Below, in pieces: positions 14,086-50,192 of a stretch of 64,000 nucleotides of DNA. The position numbers and the translations under genes are program-made. This DNA is from Diadema antillarum (taxonomy: Eukaryota), in contig NW_027271657.1 of assembly GCF_040938485.1 (NCBI RefSeq), positions 496,001 through 560,000 of the forward strand, read 5' to 3'. Each line of letters starts with the position of its first letter. Position 1 is the first letter of the stretch. A model generated the notes under the pieces. It worked only from the letters and a program-made list of their open reading frames with translations, was not told where the DNA came from and ran no database searches.

Positions 14086-15423
14086 CTACTTCCAGGGTTT
14101 CCATTCGCTCAGCCGTTGGATTTCAGTAAAATTGTGTCTTTTGTAGATCTTGATATCGTGCCTGCAAGAGTTAAACCACTCCGAGTCCTTCAGCTGCGTT
14201 CTGTGATTTGGAACAGAGTCCAAGTAAGGTAACACGTCACAAAAGTAATGCGTCTGCAGCTTGGGGTATTTTTGGAAGACTGTTCCATCTTCCCGCCATC
14301 GGAAGTAGCTGTTGTACAGCTTGGCGTCGCCTGCCACGCGCAGGATGTATCGAGCCAGCTCCTCTACCGAGGAAAAGTCACTAACATGAATGTACGAGTT
14401 TGGTGGAGCATACTTCTCATAGTCAGCCTTTCGTGGACCGTACACGATAGGGATGACATCGTTTTCGAGAGCCGACGCCCAGATCTTTTCTGTCAAGTAA
14501 TCGTCACATTCTGAGTTCTCGATTGAGAGGTAAAACTTGTACTTTCTCAACATTTTAATACACTTTTCAGATAGGCGCGGGAGGCAGGTGAGGTTTCCGC
14601 AACGACCATACGTGTCGACAGTTATAAATCGTTGAAGCTCGGTTATGAACTCATTTCGAGGCCAAAAAACCTCTTTGCAATTGCTGGCCATCCACGCAAC
14701 AAGCTCTGTTTTTCCTTCCAGCCAGTTCCTATTCACCATGCTAGTATTTTTGTGTTCGTATGGTTGGAAATACGCGTATGGGATGCTGATGTTGGAATAT
14801 GAACCGTAAGTCATGTCTATATGATACTTCATGATACCAAGTCGGGAGTTCCATTTATGCATACGTAGCGCGTTCTCCATGCTGTAAAATACCACCAGCT
14901 GGTCGTTTGGTGGTGTGTAGCCAAGAACCTTTTGAAAAGAATGAACCATGGTGAAAGGAGACAGACCAAACAAGATTCCATCCATGGTCCTAGCTTCCTG
15001 CAAGTCTGTTCCAAGGTTTATCTCTAATTGCTGATCATGGTTAGGACAGCGCACCATACAGGGCTTGGTATCTGGCTCGCCTTCTTTCACCCGTACGCAC
15101 AAAACCAAGTCCTGGAGTTCGTGCCAAGTCAATATTGCTCTCATTTCGCAGTAAATGTATAAACGACGCTTAACATTTTTAGGCAGATGAGATTTTCGAG
15201 ACACTTTGCTTGATTGGCGTTTTCCAAGATGTGTTCTCGTTTCATCGCCGTTTTGTGTATCACGTAACTCTGGCTCCTGGTTAGTTCGAACGTTGTCTCT
15301 GCTGGCGCCATTTTTGTGATGCCCCGTGCCCGGTACTGCGATGTAAGTAAAGGTCAAGAAGCTACAGATGCAGACAAGAATTATAGCTGTGGCCTTGAGA
15401 TGGAGGAGACTCACTCGCCGGCA
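14086..15423 (-). CDS. FUT-B main exon: GT10 alpha-1,3/4-fucosyltransferase, type II Golgi membrane protein, intact
   Basis: Acceptor TGATTTCTGCAG|TGCCGGCGA (CRRVSLL), then TM, stem and catalytic domain with YSMEN, AWMASNC, WPR, VDTYGRCG, YKFYLSIENSECDDYLTEK, PIVYGP, YIHVSDF. TAG at 14086-14088. The track's start at 15414 is GTG, not the true start. Confidence 0.95.
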   Translation of the reverse strand, partial: CRRVSLLHLKATAIILVCICSFLTFTYIAVPGTGHHKNGASRDNVRTNQEPELRDTQNGDETRTHLGKRQSSKVSRKSHLPKNVKRRLYIYCEMRAILTWHELQDLVLCVRVKEGEPDTKPCMVRCPNHDQQLEINLGTDLQEARTMDGILFGLSPFTMVHSFQKVLGYTPPNDQLVVFYSMENALRMHKWNSRLGIMKYHIDMTYGSYSNISIPYAYFQPYEHKNTSMVNRNWLEGKTELVAWMASNCKEVFWPRNEFITELQRFITVDTYGRCGNLTCLPRLSEKCIKMLRKYKFYLSIENSECDDYLTEKIWASALENDVIPIVYGPRKADYEKYAPPNSYIHVSDFSSVEELARYILRVAGDAKLYNSYFRWREDGTVFQKYPKLQTHYFCDVLPYLDSVPNHRTQLKDSEWFNSCRHDIKIYKRHNFTEIQRLSEWKPWK

Positions 15424-16101
15424 CTGCAGAAATCAGAACAATGACAATCATAATCTAACGATTACATATCATCAACAAAATGTTTGTTTGCTGATTCTGA
15501 ACTGATAATCAAAAAGAATCATGCTAAATATGAAAAGAAAGGAAAGATATATACGTCTATGTATACTTCTACGTTTCGGTATGTTTTTCGTATTGAATAT
15601 AATAAATGTAATGTTTGATTACGTTATGTTGTCTTAAAACGTAAAATATTACATGTTATCTTTATATTTTGACACTTATGTCACCTTTATGTCATTTTAT
15701 AGTATGTTGTCGATGGTAGGCCCTACTTTGTTTTGTCTTAATAAATGTACCACAGTATGTCGGTGTATGCTCAAACAGGACCCTCGAAAAACAATCAATT
15801 AAACATGAAACGGCTCTGCAAGCCTTGCCATATTGAAGGTGTTCTGGATAAAAATCGAAAATCGAAATAAAGACAATTAACGATCGAATAAAAAGACTTA
15901 AATTATCTTGTAAATTATTGAAAAGCATGTTTGAAAATTTTAGTTTCAATATACATCATGTAGTTCTGAAAGTTTTTATTCATATGTCCGATACTCAACC
16001 ACCAACAGTAATATTATTTGACATTCACATGACTTGATCATGATTATGAATGCTTGGGTTCTTGTCCGCAAAATGTAAAAAATGTTTAAAAAAAGGTTTA
16101 C

Positions 16102-16164
16102 CAGTAATCTTTTACACGTTCTGCTGGCTCCCATCGTGTCTGGCTGTCTAGACTCTCCGTTCAT
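16102..16164 (-). CDS. FUT-B first coding exon (MNGESRQPDT-MGASRTCKRLL), within exon 16102-16216
   Basis: Acceptor TTTTGGTTTTCAG at 16217 and donor TTACTG|GTAAAC at 16101. In-frame ATGs at 16164 and 16134 (the latter in strong ACGATGG context). Phase 0 joins the main exon, giving 466 or 456 aa. Confidence 0.75.
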
Positions 16165-22650: not shown

Positions 22651-24617
22651 GGTCGTTCATCAAATCATTAACATGAATAAATGAATCACGATAACTGATG
22701 CATTTTCTGTAACAAATGCGAGACACTGATTAAGAAGTTCATAATAATTTCCTGAGTGTCTCATGCGGATGACTGTGTACACGTTATGTGGCTGCATATT
22801 AGGTGGTATCAATTCACACACACACACACACATAACTGAATGTTCGATCATCATGATCATATTGCATGAAGGAGTTTCTTCTTTCCCCCGATCTCCATAA
22901 TTGACCAGTTTAGTGTTATGCACTTGTTGTGGCGTATCTCTGAACCTTTGGACGTTAATCGTAATGTCAATGTGGCCACAATGTTTCACAGAGAAATCAA
23001 ACTTTGATCCCATCTTATTTGCATGCCACTCTCTTGACGAGCAATTACGTTAATTGCATTACAAATACATTTAGCTCAGTCCTTATTTTCGTGTGGGTTT
23101 TGACCCAAATTTGCAGCGCAACCATGAAGTGTGACTTCAGAGTGGAAAATGTGTGATTGGAATTATAGCCTGCATTGAAGATCTGTGAAAAAGATCTGCA
23201 AAATTTAAAAGGAACCACAAAACAAATTACAGCAATGTATCTTTTATCGTGTAGGGATCATCAGGTAAACATCAAATCAGAATGCATCTTAGTAAAGAAA
23301 CACTGTATACGCCATGTTCTTATATTGCTGTCTTAAAGGCCTACGGTGGCATTCAATATAATTAATGTTTCCAAATTACAACTAACTAAACATTGTAGTA
23401 TAATTCATACTTACACGTATGTGTATGTTTGTTAGTGTATGTATACGTTTGCGTTTGAGTGCGTGTGTTTAATATACGTGATTTTCAATACGATTTGTCC
23501 ATATAGCGAGCCTGGTGTGCATGATTTGATACCGATAATGGACAAAACCTGCAATTGTATCTGAATTATTTGATGAAAAATATTGATGGCATTAATGCTT
23601 CTAACTTTTATTTTATGACGTCTATGATCACAGATCCTGATGTTGGTAGACACTCAAAATGTTCCCAATGAAAAGCCGCGAACCGATTTCGGGGATTCCT
23701 GACATCCTGACCAAGTCTAATTTATCACCTGCATCATGATGACAAGCGCCACCAAGAGTGCGAGATGGGAATCTTTTCTGGAGGCGCTCAGACGGGCAAT
23801 GCAGCTATTGGTCAGTTGTGTGACGGTAAACATCCATCTGTCTCCTTTTAACTCAATCCGGAAAGTGGGAGACTCAGGGAGAGAGCGACCAACTTTCCTA
23901 TTTCACTTCTAACACGTCTACATCTACTTAAGAGAAAAAATGTCTAATGAGTTAATCAAACCATTATGTTTGGGTATATATAAAGCAAGGCAATATATTG
24001 ATAGGAGCAATGGTGACTGTGAAAGAGGCATAAAGAGATATATTTTGCTTTACTATATACAGTGTAATACTGGAACTAACCAGAGAGATGGGAAGATCTC
24101 TTCCCACCTCTCTGAACTAACACACGTGAACGCTTTCCATGTCATTCCTAAAATCATCCTACGATACATCAAGTATACGAATTTAACAATCCGTGTTCAG
24201 ATAAGACACTAGTTTTCAAAACAGATCGAATATGATACTCTTTCAGAGAGAGGTATAGTTCAATTTCCCTTTTGATTTAAAACAACAACAACAAACAAAC
24301 AAACAAACAAACTAACTCCCTGCCTCACTCCAAAGGCTGTTATCATGCTAATCTGCAGAGACATTCAGCTCCGTCTCTTGTCTGTGACGTCACTAACACT
24401 TGCATTTCCTAATTTTGTGTGCTTATGGTAACATTACTTTTACCTTAATGAAAACACGAAGATATCATTAAAATCATTGAACTATCACCTTGTATTTTCT
24501 GAGAAAATAAATAAACAAACAAACAAACAAACAAGAAGTTGACTGATTGCCGCTATATTGCTATAGTTTGACTTTTTATTAAACACAACGAATAATGATT
24601 TCTGCGTAAGTTACGCC

Positions 24618-24659
24618 ATGGTCATGTTGTCAGCTATTCAATGTCATTACAGAATGGTG
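24618..24659 (+). CDS. FUT-C first coding exon (MVMLSAIQCHYRMV)
   Basis: Kozak GCCATGG at 24615-24621, 14 open codons, donor GTG|GTAAGC at 24660, phase 0, matching the phase-0 acceptor at 26489. C..R-hydrophobic-hydrophobic ending parallels the FUT-A/B tails. Inferred, no transcript. Confidence 0.6.
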
Positions 24660-24700
24660 GTAAGCTAAATTACTTATTGGTAAATAATATGTCGTAAATG

Positions 24701-25854
24701 TTTTTATGCCTCCGCCACGAAGTGTCGCCGGAGGCATTATGTTTTCGGGTTGTCCGTCCTTCCGTCCGTCCGTCCGTCCGTCCGTAATCAATCTTGTGGG
24801 CAGGGTAACTAAAAAACCGTTTGAGGTATCCTAATGAAACATGGCATGTATGTGTATGAGTAGGAAAAGTTGTGCCTATCAACTTAAAGGTGCACATGAT
24901 CAAGATCAAAGGTCGACGGGTCAAGGTCAATTGCTCAAAATTTCACTATTTCCCCCATATCTATGTAATGCCGGAGGTATTTTCTTGAAACTTAGTGTAT
25001 ACATGTATTACCCAATAATTCTCTAGAGAGAGTTTCGAGCTATGAGGTCAAAGGTCAGAGGTCAAAGGTCAAGTGAATATGTTAAAATTTCACTTTTTTC
25101 TCCATATATATTGGAAGTGGTTCACGGTGTCTTCATGGAACTTGGTACATAATTATACATGTACTGACTGGCACAGATTATCTTGGGAATTTTGGGGTCA
25201 CCGGGTGAAGGGTCAAAGGTTAAGGTCAACTCCTCAAAATTTCACTATTTCCCTCATATCCATGCAATGCCTGCAAGTTTTTTCTGAAACTTAGTGTATA
25301 CACATATTACCCAATAGAGATTTGCTTGGAAAGGTTTTCGCCAAAAGGTTAAAGGTCAAGTGAACATGCTAAATTTCATTTTCTTCCTCCATATCTCGAA
25401 AATCGCTCAAGGTATCATTATCATTATGAAGCTTTGTACATATGTATGCATGTACTGCCTGACAGTGATTCTCATGGGAATTTAGGGTTATAAGGGTGAA
25501 AAGTCAAGGGTCAAATGCAATGTTAAAATGCTAAAATTTTACTATGTAATACTGAAATTACACTTTTTCTCCATACCTTGGAAATAAATCAATTCATAAA
25601 GGATCAAAAGTCAAGTAAAATTCTTCAAAACCCCAATACCTGCTCTTTTTGATAGACAATAGCCAGTCATCAAATTAAACCTGGTTCAAGGAAAGTGAAC
25701 AATCAACACATTTGGGACAAACATGTCATTTTAATATTTTCCCAGTTATGTCAAACTGCCATCACGCATTGTCAAGTCATTCTATACGTAGACCTAGTGG
25801 AGAACCATGCATTATGGCGGAGGCATTCCAGTCGCCACAGCGACATTTCTAGTT
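24701..25854 (+). mobile_element. Helentron-associated non-autonomous element (HINE / DINE-1 / Pearl / Tsp type)
   Basis: 5' subTIR ATGCCTCCGCCA with nearby partner CCGGAGGCAT, (CCGT)n microsatellite ~24755-24784, ~150-bp core repeats, 3' subTIR TGGCGGAGGCAT (25815-25826), stem-loop GTCGCCACAGCGAC, T-rich ends. Sits in the inferred FUT-C intron 1. Confidence 0.9.
25045..25071 (+). promoter_or_regulatory. Four AGGTCA half-sites in DR1 spacing
   Basis: AGGTCA-A-AGGTCA-G-AGGTCA-A-AGGTCA read directly. Nuclear-receptor binding is inferred only. Confidence 0.45.
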
Positions 25855-26489
25855 GTGTTTCTATTTTACGACTTCTGATTCAATAAGGATGCGTGGCACG
25901 GCTAATGTGGAGACAAAGCATGAAAGAACTGTACATAGAGTGGTTACATGATATCACTGCTTATGGTGAAAGTGCATTATTTAGGTGATGGGGGAAAGGG
26001 TTGACTACGTGACAAAATGATGCTTGTCGGAGAAAAATCTAAGGACGTGAATTAGTAAATGGGGTAGAGAATGGACTGTCAGTAGACCACGAGAAATGTT
26101 AAGAATGATGGCCACAAGACAGTGCAAGAAGTAGAGGTATTAATAGGTTATTGGCCGGGCATAAACTTTCAATCTGGGCATAGATTCCCTGCAATTATAA
26201 TCACACGTGGTGTTCTGAAAACACAAGAAATTCCTTTGATTGATTTCCAGAAACTTTACTATAATCCATTGCGTGGAGTGCATCGATTTCATATTATTAA
26301 AAGTTCCGTCGAGAAAGATTTCGCCTCCAGTCTACCTGACAGACTAAGTAGGACCTACAGGACTGTTTTGAGCTTACATTTCGCTGTACTCATTACCTGA
26401 ACGATAGATTACTATTCGATTGTATCACTTGTTATCCTGAACAGTTCTTAGCAATATGATAGACGCACTTTTCTGTTTCCTGCACACAG

Positions 26490-27749
26490 GCATGGGTGTC
26501 CAGGTCATGTCTTTATCCCTACGCCTTCTTCTTGGGAATCGTCACCGTCGTAGCCGTCTTCCAAGTCATCAACCTCATCGATCCACCCTACGTCATCAAG
26601 TTCCAAGGAGCCCTGGAAGACAGAGTGGCCTTGTCAGCTCCGGACGGATCACTTCCGGAGTGCGTCTATGACGTCCTCATCTTCGCTAAACCAATTTTGC
26701 TGAGTCGACAGTCTGAGTTTCTTAGTCTGACGTCACAATTGAAGAAAGTTGCTGGTCATAGACGTGATATCAAGGTTGAATGTGATGCGGAGCCAAAGCA
26801 AGTACAATGCTCTCTCCAAGTTAGTGTATCTGCCAATGAGACTGACCTCAAACACAGGGATGTAGTTATCTTTGGTCTGTCTCCTTCATCGTTGAGAGGA
26901 AGGATAGACGGTCTGAAATCAGATTCCCTACATAAACCCAACCAGCTCTGGGTTTTCATGTCGATGTTAGCACCACTTAAAGCCATAAAACTAAATCCCA
27001 AGCTTGGAAGCTTTCCCGTTCATCTCTCTTGGACATATATGTCTGCATCTGAGCTGACGACACCGTTTGGGTATTACATTCCAGATGAACCAATGGACAC
27101 CAATGTGGTCATTCCAAATCATTCAGGAAAACGTAAAATAATGGCGTGGATGGGTAATAACTGTGGGACGGACACATATTGGCCTCGAGACGCATACTTG
27201 AACGAGCTCTCCAAACACATTCATATCGACCGATACGGCCCTTGTACCAATCTCACTTGTCTTCCCATGGATTCAGAACAATGTGGAATGCTAATGGGTC
27301 AGTACAAGTTTTTCATTGCCTTTGAAGACGCAGAATGCCAAGAGTACATCACGAACCAGTTCTGGCAAACTGCCCTCCTTCATTACACCATTCCTGTAGT
27401 ATACGGCGCCAGAAAAGTCAGCTTCCTCAAATTCGCTCCACCAGGCTCCTACATACATGCTGCTGACTTTGCTTCACCCAAAGCGCTCGCCGATTACCTT
27501 AAGGTAGTTGCCAAGAATGACGGATTGTACCTCAAGTACTTTAAGTGGAGGAGCTTGGGATCAATCAAGAAGGCATATCCCCCCTTTCGAAGGGAGTCAC
27601 TGTGCAGATTATTGCCTCACATCCGGGACGTTAAGGTTGGGAGGTTACAGAGAAAACCCTTGTCTGAAACCAAGTGGTATCAGAGTTGCCGCAAAGGACA
27701 AAATACTTCTCAAATATCATCATTGAAAACATGGGTCCCATGGAGATGA
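26490..27749 (+). CDS. FUT-C main exon: GT10 fucosyltransferase-like protein, intact ORF but catalytic motifs degenerate
   Basis: Acceptor TTTCCTGCACACAG|GCATGG. TM (AFFLGIVTVVAVFQVI), DVVIFGLSP, AWMGNNC, WPR, IDRYGPC, YKFFIAFEDAECQEYITNQFW, PVVYGA, YIHAADF, terminal WVPWR-TGA. 433 aa with the upstream exon. Confidence 0.92.
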   Translation, partial: AWVSRSCLYPYAFFLGIVTVVAVFQVINLIDPPYVIKFQGALEDRVALSAPDGSLPECVYDVLIFAKPILLSRQSEFLSLTSQLKKVAGHRRDIKVECDAEPKQVQCSLQVSVSANETDLKHRDVVIFGLSPSSLRGRIDGLKSDSLHKPNQLWVFMSMLAPLKAIKLNPKLGSFPVHLSWTYMSASELTTPFGYYIPDEPMDTNVVIPNHSGKRKIMAWMGNNCGTDTYWPRDAYLNELSKHIHIDRYGPCTNLTCLPMDSEQCGMLMGQYKFFIAFEDAECQEYITNQFWQTALLHYTIPVVYGARKVSFLKFAPPGSYIHAADFASPKALADYLKVVAKNDGLYLKYFKWRSLGSIKKAYPPFRRESLCRLLPHIRDVKVGRLQRKPLSETKWYQSCRKGQNTSQISSLKTWVPWR

Positions 27750-27802: not shown

Positions 27803-27808
27803 AATAAA
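27803..27808 (+). terminator. Candidate poly(A) signal of FUT-C
   Basis: AATAAA ~54 nt after the stop. Usage unproven. Confidence 0.35.
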
Positions 27809-32343: not shown

Positions 32344-42062
<9,719 letters not shown>

Positions 42063-50061: not shown

Positions 50062-50192
50062 NNNNNNNNNNNNNNNNNNNNNNNNNNNNNNNNNNNNNNN
50101 NNNNNNNNNNNNNNNNNNNNNNNNNNNNNNNNNNNNNNNNNNNNNNNNNNNNNNNNNNNNNNNNNNNNNNNNNNNNNNNNNNNNNNNNNNNN
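50062..50192. other. Assembly gap (131 N)
   Basis: Run of N. Confidence 1.

Follow-up and report, generated by a model that had tools for sequence, protein, structure and literature searches.

The closest described systems to the gene studied here are fucosyltransferases of the glycosyltransferase family GT10 (alpha-1,3/4-fucosyltransferases). In human FUT9 (PDB 8D0O-8D0X), Glu137 is the probable base, Arg202 and Lys256 act on the diphosphate, and Asn195 and Asn246 on the donor, guanosine diphosphate (GDP)-fucose (PMC12717137). In AtFUT11 the base is Glu158, whose exchange (E158A) abolishes activity, while Glu280 contacts the guanosine and Ser218, Asn219, Arg226, Asn271 and Lys281 contact the pyrophosphate. 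For the H. pylori FucT, mutants of Glu95 and Glu249 are virtually inactive, and Tyr246, Glu249 and Lys250 are in contact with the donor. The GDP-fucose pocket is reported to be 100% conserved in all human GT10 proteins, the O-fucosyltransferases FUT10 and FUT11 included. Here we analyse FUT-C, a GT10 gene on the forward strand of a 64,000-nucleotide stretch of the sea urchin Diadema antillarum (assembly GCF_040938485.1, contig NW_027271657.1, positions 496,001 to 560,000), which is called the window in the following and whose own positions are given throughout.

FUT-C resembles FUT9 in its Pfam family, GT-B fold, type II topology and cysteine pattern, and also shares with it the YKF...Y.T..FW motif frame and the equivalents of Arg202, Asn195 and the motif Tyr. 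However, in contrast to FUT9 it lacks Glu137, Asn246, Lys256 and the Ser of the 'SN' pair, and in Diadema also Glu255. The missing residues are invariant in 28-30 of the 30 aligned GT10 relatives. FUT-C combines homology to an enzyme family with the loss of residues that are essential in GT10, and it is conserved in orthologues and under purifying selection, both of which are marks of a pseudoenzyme. We consider it likely that FUT-C is a conserved pseudo-fucosyltransferase, which would not transfer fucose by the mechanism of the family and would be retained for a non-catalytic function.

The GT10 paralogues FUT10 and FUT11 (recently reassigned as POFUT3/4) likewise departed from Lewis-type fucosylation and changed the acceptor class. 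However, these are active and keep the whole GDP-fucose pocket, as do all characterised members of the family, while FUT-C does not. Inactive paralogues with a glycosyltransferase fold that support an active relative are known in Cosmc/C1GALT1C1 with T-synthase and in plant GAUT7 with GAUT1. Both belong to other glycosyltransferase families than FUT-C and would be a parallel in the way of working only. In the literature searched, the coverage of which is incomplete, no GT10 pseudoenzyme was found, which is the absence of a find and not a proof; the search, with the same limit, also agrees with an earlier note on this DNA, made from the letters alone, which knew of no described GT10 pseudoenzyme partner. 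No papers citing the accessions of the FUT-C orthologues were found in the literature searched.

Catalytic and donor-binding residues

Coding exon 2 of FUT-C (26490-27749, +) encodes 419 amino acids followed by TGA and comprises a transmembrane helix and a short stem in addition to the entire GT10 luminal domain. Residue numbers of FUT-C refer to the product of this exon; for the full protein 24 has to be added. The residue equivalences to FUT9 rest on an HMMER alignment (8d0o) and on MAFFT, with the FUT9 numbers counted against PMC12717137.

At the position of the base Glu (FUT9 Glu137, AtFUT11 Glu158, H. pylori Glu95) FUT-C carries Leu160 (TTA at 26967-26969, +, within FMSMLAPL). All urchin FUT-C orthologues have L or Q here, and all other aligned GT10 proteins (30/30) have E. 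The E-N-S sequence is changed to E-D-A (GAA GAC GCA at 27324-27332, +), by which Asp280 replaces the donor-binding Asn (FUT9 Asn246, AtFUT11 Asn271); Diadema has Asp at this position and the camarodont orthologues have Ser. The E-K of YxTEK (FUT9 Glu255-Lys256, H. pylori Glu249-Lys250, AtFUT11 Glu280-Lys281) is replaced by N-Q (AAC CAG at 27354-27359, +). The Lys, corresponding to Gln290, is lost in all orthologues (Q/S/P) and present in 30 of the 30 other aligned GT10 proteins, while the Glu (Asn289) is lost in Diadema only. The codons at these three sites are exactly those given in the earlier note; they align in HMMER to FUT9 Glu137, Asn246-Ser247 and Glu255-Lys256, and they are also present in the second Diadema haplotig, L012, and are thus no slip of the assembly. 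The alpha-1,3-FucT motif F-E-N-S...Y-x-T-E-K is absent in this form: Diadema has FEDAECQEYITNQ and the camarodonts have FESSECREYITE(S/P). The Asn and Lys of the motif are lost throughout the FUT-C clade and its Tyr (Tyr286) is kept.

A further change concerns Asn223-Asn224 (27156-27161, +), where the Ser of the 'SN' pair (AtFUT11 Ser218) is lost, being N in Diadema and D in most camarodonts, and the Asn (FUT9 Asn195, AtFUT11 Asn219) is kept. Also kept is the diphosphate-binding Arg (FUT9 Arg202, AtFUT11 Arg226), which is Arg233 in FUT-C (27186-27188, +); like Asn224 it is found in all FUT-C orthologues. The claim that all key catalytic residues are lost has therefore to be narrowed: FUT-C is without the base and about half of the donor contacts, but Asn224, Arg233 and Tyr286 remain.

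Conservation of 85% or more among 30 other GT10 proteins defines 48 positions, of which 37, mostly Cys, Gly, Pro and aromatic residues, are kept in FUT-C and its orthologues. Non-conservative losses in FUT-C are W74, E160, S223, N280 and K290, together with E289 in Diadema, and the sole new residue that is fixed throughout the clade at a family-conserved position is the Thr of G253T. The losses are indeed concentrated at catalytic and donor-binding sites, as had been proposed from the letters, affecting 4-5 of the 8 functional positions versus 2 of the 40 other conserved ones (Fisher test, p 0.005, or 0.0006 with E289 counted). The motifs that had been listed as kept are present (WMGNNC, WPR, YGPC, YKF, PVVYG, YIHAADF and WVPW). 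The former catalytic positions vary among the FUT-C orthologues (L/Q; D/S; A/S; N/E; Q/S/P), and the lost positions show no new acidic or basic residue that is conserved across the clade and could compensate. Because the lost positions vary while their surroundings are conserved, the constraint on catalysis appears to be relaxed with the fold kept.

The open reading frame of FUT-C (26496-27749, +; 417 amino acids) is uninterrupted and belongs to GT10, as had been stated before: it matches the Pfam family PF00852 (Glyco_transf_10) with 156 bits (cut-off 23.9, E 1e-45). The match to the N-terminal domain PF17039 reaches 19 bits only, which is below the cut-off of 28.7. The AlphaFold2 model of FUT-C is confident, with a predicted local distance difference test (pLDDT) value of 86.6 and a predicted template modelling (pTM) score of 0.80. 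In a Foldseek search with this model the top match was human FUT9 (E 9e-19, template modelling score 0.76-0.77, normalised to the target), and AtFUT11, mango FUT13 and the H. pylori FucT were further top matches. As the model matches these four proteins, the predicted GT-B fold of FUT-C is preserved and superposable on solved GT10 structures. The topology is that of a type II protein, with a hydrophobic helix predicted by AlphaFold2 at residues 8-30 of the exon 2 product.

Conservation is distributed unevenly along the protein. Identity is highest in the C-terminal nucleotide-binding half (0.7-0.8), whereas the acceptor-side positions reach only about 0.35-0.55 around residues 150-230 (full-protein numbering). 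As counted from the alignments, there is no conservation at the positions corresponding to FUT9 His141 and Trp330. The transmembrane segment (YPYAFFLGIVTVVAVFQVINLI; 26514-26579, +) is unusually conserved among urchin orthologues. Over the transmembrane and juxtamembrane segment (CLYPYAF...DPPYVIK) Diadema and the camarodonts share 75-78% identity versus 51% for the whole protein, and the conservation of 26514-26600 (+) across urchins is about that of the best part of the luminal domain. Among Golgi glycosyltransferases the transmembrane and stem regions usually show the lowest conservation, and a segment conserved to this degree is unusual for a protein of this kind.

Orthologues, selection and origin of the loss

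Orthologues of FUT-C were found in Strongylocentrotus purpuratus (XP_784963.2), Lytechinus variegatus (XP_041458945.1), Lytechinus pictus (XP_063953255.1) and a Strongylocentrotus-like population sample. The urchin orthologues are annotated as "FUT3-like" or "FUT6". All of them share the losses, with Glu replaced by L/Q, Ser by N/D, the Asn of ENS by D/S and the Lys of TEK by Q/S/P. In a profile search of the whole library the FUT-C clade forms one cluster at 50%, the score falling steeply from 767 to 354 bits at the next matches, and no further divergent cluster of the FUT-C type was found in this search.

The ratio of nonsynonymous to synonymous substitution rates (dN/dS) was determined only for the closer pairs, as the synonymous rate (dS) between Diadema and the camarodonts is saturated. 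It is 0.06-0.08 between L. pictus and L. variegatus (dS 0.06-0.08), 0.13-0.19 between S. purpuratus and its congener (dS 0.08-0.11) and 0.09-0.13 between Lytechinus and Strongylocentrotus (dS 0.7-1.0). Purifying selection on FUT-C has been strong in sea urchins, going back to before Diadema and the camarodonts split. The test proposed in the earlier note, orthologues with a conserved loss of catalytic residues and a dN/dS below 1, gave the expected outcome: three other urchins have orthologues at this genomic position that lack the base Glu, ENS Asn and TEK Lys, and the values are 0.06-0.19 for pairs with unsaturated dS.

A second copy of the locus is found on the contig L012, of which positions 1-20470 are collinear with 13297-33701 of the window at 89-99% identity, mostly 95-98%. 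L012 is probably the other Diadema haplotype, an unpurged haplotig. Its FUT-C reading frame is complete; that its model XP_071496245.1 is labelled partial is a matter of annotation. Between the two haplotypes the 1260 nucleotides of FUT-C exon 2 differ by three synonymous changes and one nonsynonymous change; indels are absent. In 3.85 kb of adjacent intron and 3' flank there are 39 substitutions and 21 gap openings, and the intron by itself shows 25 and 12, respectively, over about 2.6 kb. From this non-coding sequence 12.8 substitutions and 6.9 indels would be expected in exon 2 (Poisson p 0.004 and 0.001, respectively). For FUT-B, the neighbouring GT10 gene, 16 synonymous and nine nonsynonymous codons differ between the same haplotypes.

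Trees recover the FUT-C clade at 100% support and place it in a well-supported group with the sea-star proteins P0011 (Acanthaster) and P0010 (Patiria), P0050 of the sea cucumber Apostichopus, and a crinoid pair. The sea-star genes Acanthaster LOC110978133 (P0011) and Patiria LOC119729661 (P0010) are sister or near-sister of FUT-C in both trees. These positional orthologues, which lie head-to-head with a FUT-B-type gene, keep every catalytic residue (E...EN...TEK) and carry a low-complexity stem of about 200 amino acids that urchin FUT-C lacks. The nearest sea-cucumber relative, Apostichopus P0050, has the canonical residues as well. Since the sea-star positional genes and the sea-cucumber relative keep the catalytic residues, the loss probably took place on the echinoid stem, later than the separation from sea stars and sea cucumbers but earlier than that of Diadema and the camarodonts. 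The latter separation dates back more than 200 million years. In the crinoid relatives the donor motifs are partly degenerate, being TDQ in Anneissia and EDA...THK in Antedon. As the branching inside the group of urchin, sea-star, sea-cucumber and crinoid genes is not resolved, these were treated as events separate from the loss in FUT-C.

Possible functions of FUT-C and related echinoderm genes

The earlier note had named as candidate roles those of a chaperone or partner subunit, a glycan-binding scaffold or a dominant regulator. In the scenario that we prefer, FUT-C, which has two exons and encodes a type II membrane protein with the complete GT-B fold of GT10 alpha-1,3/4-fucosyltransferases, would have been stripped on the echinoid stem of its general-base Glu and of three residues contacting GDP-fucose (the 'SN' Ser, 'ENS' Asn and 'TEK' Lys), and in Diadema additionally of the TEK Glu. 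Since then it would have stayed an intact gene under strong purifying selection. In the Golgi membrane its product may act as a partner or regulator of active fucosyltransferases by protein-protein or glycan contacts. The first candidate partner would be FUT-B, which appears to have been linked head-to-head with FUT-C since before the divergence of urchins and sea stars; it is suggested because this linkage is conserved from sea stars to urchins and because the transmembrane segment of FUT-C is conserved.

Several points weigh against this scenario. The sea stars have the same linkage to FUT-B with both genes looking active, and what speaks for a role as FUT-B partner consists of the linkage and the transmembrane conservation only. 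FUT-C keeps Arg233, Asn224 and Tyr286, and as the C-terminal nucleotide-binding half is its most conserved region, the protein may still bind a nucleotide or nucleotide sugar. POFUT1, a GT-B fucosyltransferase without a classical base, uses the beta-phosphate as base (PMC12717137). Selection on FUT-C within Diadema is judged from two haplotypes only, the protein collection containing no orthologue from D. setosum. A search for sequencing runs listed no RNA run for the locus, and the ten Logan contigs with the Strongylocentrotus-like orthologue include intron and acceptor 5' of exon 2 and look genomic.

The strongest competing explanation, to which we give a minor but real chance, is that FUT-C is still an enzyme with altered chemistry, using another base (substrate- or phosphate-assisted) or another nucleotide sugar, or acting like a GDP-fucose hydrolase. 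The three retained residues and the highly conserved donor-domain core fit with this, as does the precedent of POFUT1 for a fucosyltransferase without a classical base (PMC12717137); the strong purifying selection would fit catalysis equally well, and urchins make unusual fucose polymers with unknown synthases, in a phylum with about 79 GT10 genes. However, the substituted positions differ between orthologues, which is unexpected for a newly recruited catalytic set, just Gly253 to Thr is fixed clade-wide among the family-conserved positions, and the Lys and the Asn that hold the pyrophosphate in all characterised GT10 enzymes are both lost.

That FUT-C is a lectin-like protein which binds glycans or cargo by its former acceptor site and needs no fucosyltransferase partner appears improbable to us. 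Its fold is kept and its luminal domain is under selection, and lectins derived from dead enzymes are an established outcome in other carbohydrate-active families, but the acceptor side, where such a function would be located, is only moderately conserved, and the positions matching FUT9 His141 and Trp330 are not conserved. Least of all, with hardly any probability left to it, FUT-C could be a young or unitary pseudogene that is intact by chance, or its odd codons could be errors of the assembly. The cluster does hold one truly decayed GT10 copy; however, the same losses occur at the same locus in three other species at dN/dS 0.06-0.19, and both Diadema haplotypes keep the full FUT-C reading frame, in which substitutions are rarer than in the flanks and indels are absent. 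A young pseudogene or an assembly error was rejected on the strength of the orthologues, the dN/dS values and the second haplotype.

If FUT-C is a pseudo-fucosyltransferase, it would be the first well-supported GT10 pseudoenzyme, lacking the base and half of the donor contacts and maintained in the urchin lineages at a dN/dS of about 0.1, and should it act as a partner of FUT-B, it would be the first pseudo-glycosyltransferase subunit in GT10. The question can be tested in laboratory urchins, since the orthologue is present in S. purpuratus, L. variegatus and L. pictus, with the sea-star orthologue as a natural active-looking control and FUT-B as the obvious candidate partner.

Eight catalytic and donor positions were tabulated in 149 sequences matched in the profile search. 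The full canonical set is present in 88 of the 149, and almost all of the others keep the base Glu and the TEK Lys; what differs in them is mostly the 'SN' pair or the Asn of ENS, which is changed to Ser. Five representatives are without both the base Glu and the TEK Lys. Among the dead-looking genes is a second, unrelated GT10 gene of Diadema, P0078 (L016:3001-4731, D. antillarum), with its D. setosum orthologue P0193 (L017:3001-4734). These single-exon genes of 576-577 amino acids lack the base Glu, the ENS Asn and the Glu-Lys of TEK, and have a dN/dS of 0.18-0.25 at dS 0.12-0.15 with flanks that are 14-19% divergent. A holothurian clade of two genera (Holothuria P0170 with Apostichopus P0185/P0197) and two ENA proteins (P0080 and P0115) are dead-looking as well. 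Like FUT-C, these are intact predicted proteins without base Glu and TEK Lys; they lie outside the window.

Because the dead-looking genes fall in separate supported subclades, there look to be at least four further independent losses in echinoderm GT10 genes beyond FUT-C. Echinoderm genomes are reported to have about 79 GT10 genes on average, an expansion that seems to have given rise to dead-looking members repeatedly. Several independent lineages of this kind would suggest a general, unrecognised non-catalytic use of the GT10 fold, and they call for caution in counting all of the about 80 GT10 genes per echinoderm genome as fucosyltransferases. The far-reaching version, in which echinoderm GT10 folds turned into conserved non-catalytic proteins at least five times and urchin FUT-C is an obligate partner or regulator of FUT-B that tunes fucosylated glycans, is rather speculative and in our view unlikely. 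Separately, in the crinoid GT10 proteins P0054, P0065 and P0165 catalytic or donor residues are lost or partly lost.

Gene structure and neighbourhood

The reading frame of FUT-C lacks its own ATG; a splice acceptor (cacag/GCATGG) at 26489/26490 and stop codons just 5' of 26490 precede it. Coding exon 1 lies at 23739-23810 (+) and encodes a cytoplasmic tail of 24 amino acids (MTSATK...MQLL), which is 100% identical to residues 1-24 of P0001 in tblastn. Its ATG is at 23739, with a further in-frame ATG at 23736, and the donor GT is at 23811 (GTCAGT). The intron (23811-26489, +) ends with cacag at 26485-26489 and contains a (GTCC)n microsatellite near 24745-24790. Joined, the two exons give XP_071505495.1 (P0047, 443 amino acids, Diadema) with zero differences, and the NCBI gene models have spliced 5' exons in four species. 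The earlier note had let FUT-C begin at 24618. A plausible ATG with a GT donor exists there, but it has no homology support and falls inside the intron; because it is with the exon at 23739-23810 that the NCBI protein is obtained exactly, this start was rejected. An AATAAA at 27803-27808 (+), 54 nucleotides past the stop codon of FUT-C, is a possible polyadenylation signal.

The window contains three GT10 copies, at 3614-4702 (-), 14086-15414 (-) and, as FUT-C, at 26496-27749 (+). The copy at 14086-15414 is FUT-B, a canonical GT10 gene which is transcribed divergently from FUT-C and extends over 14086-16164 (-), with exon 2 at about 14086-15424 and a short exon 1 at about 16102-16164. It is intact, keeps SMEN, ENS and YLTEK, and has the same layout as FUT-C, a short tail exon followed by the transmembrane segment and the catalytic domain; its model on L012 has 466 amino acids. 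The copy at 3614-4702 (-) is related to FUT-B, with SMEN still visible, but contains several stops and frameshifts. It is a true pseudogene and an internal contrast to FUT-C. Of the two copies that the earlier note had used for comparison with FUT-C, only the one at 14086-15414 (-) stands as an intact gene, the other being this decayed one.

Downstream of FUT-C, exons of a short-chain dehydrogenase/reductase (SDR) are found at 32344-39783 (+). The same SDR neighbour lies 3' of the FUT-C orthologue in S. purpuratus and L. variegatus, and the order FUT-B(-), FUT-C(+), SDR(+) is common to Diadema and S. purpuratus and seen partly in L. variegatus. The FUT-C genes of S. purpuratus and Lytechinus are positional orthologues. 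A head-to-head pair of FUT-B and FUT-C type is present in S. purpuratus, L. variegatus, Acanthaster and another sea star. Finally, the window contains two runs of N, at 10321-10454 (134 bases) and 50062-50192 (131 bases).

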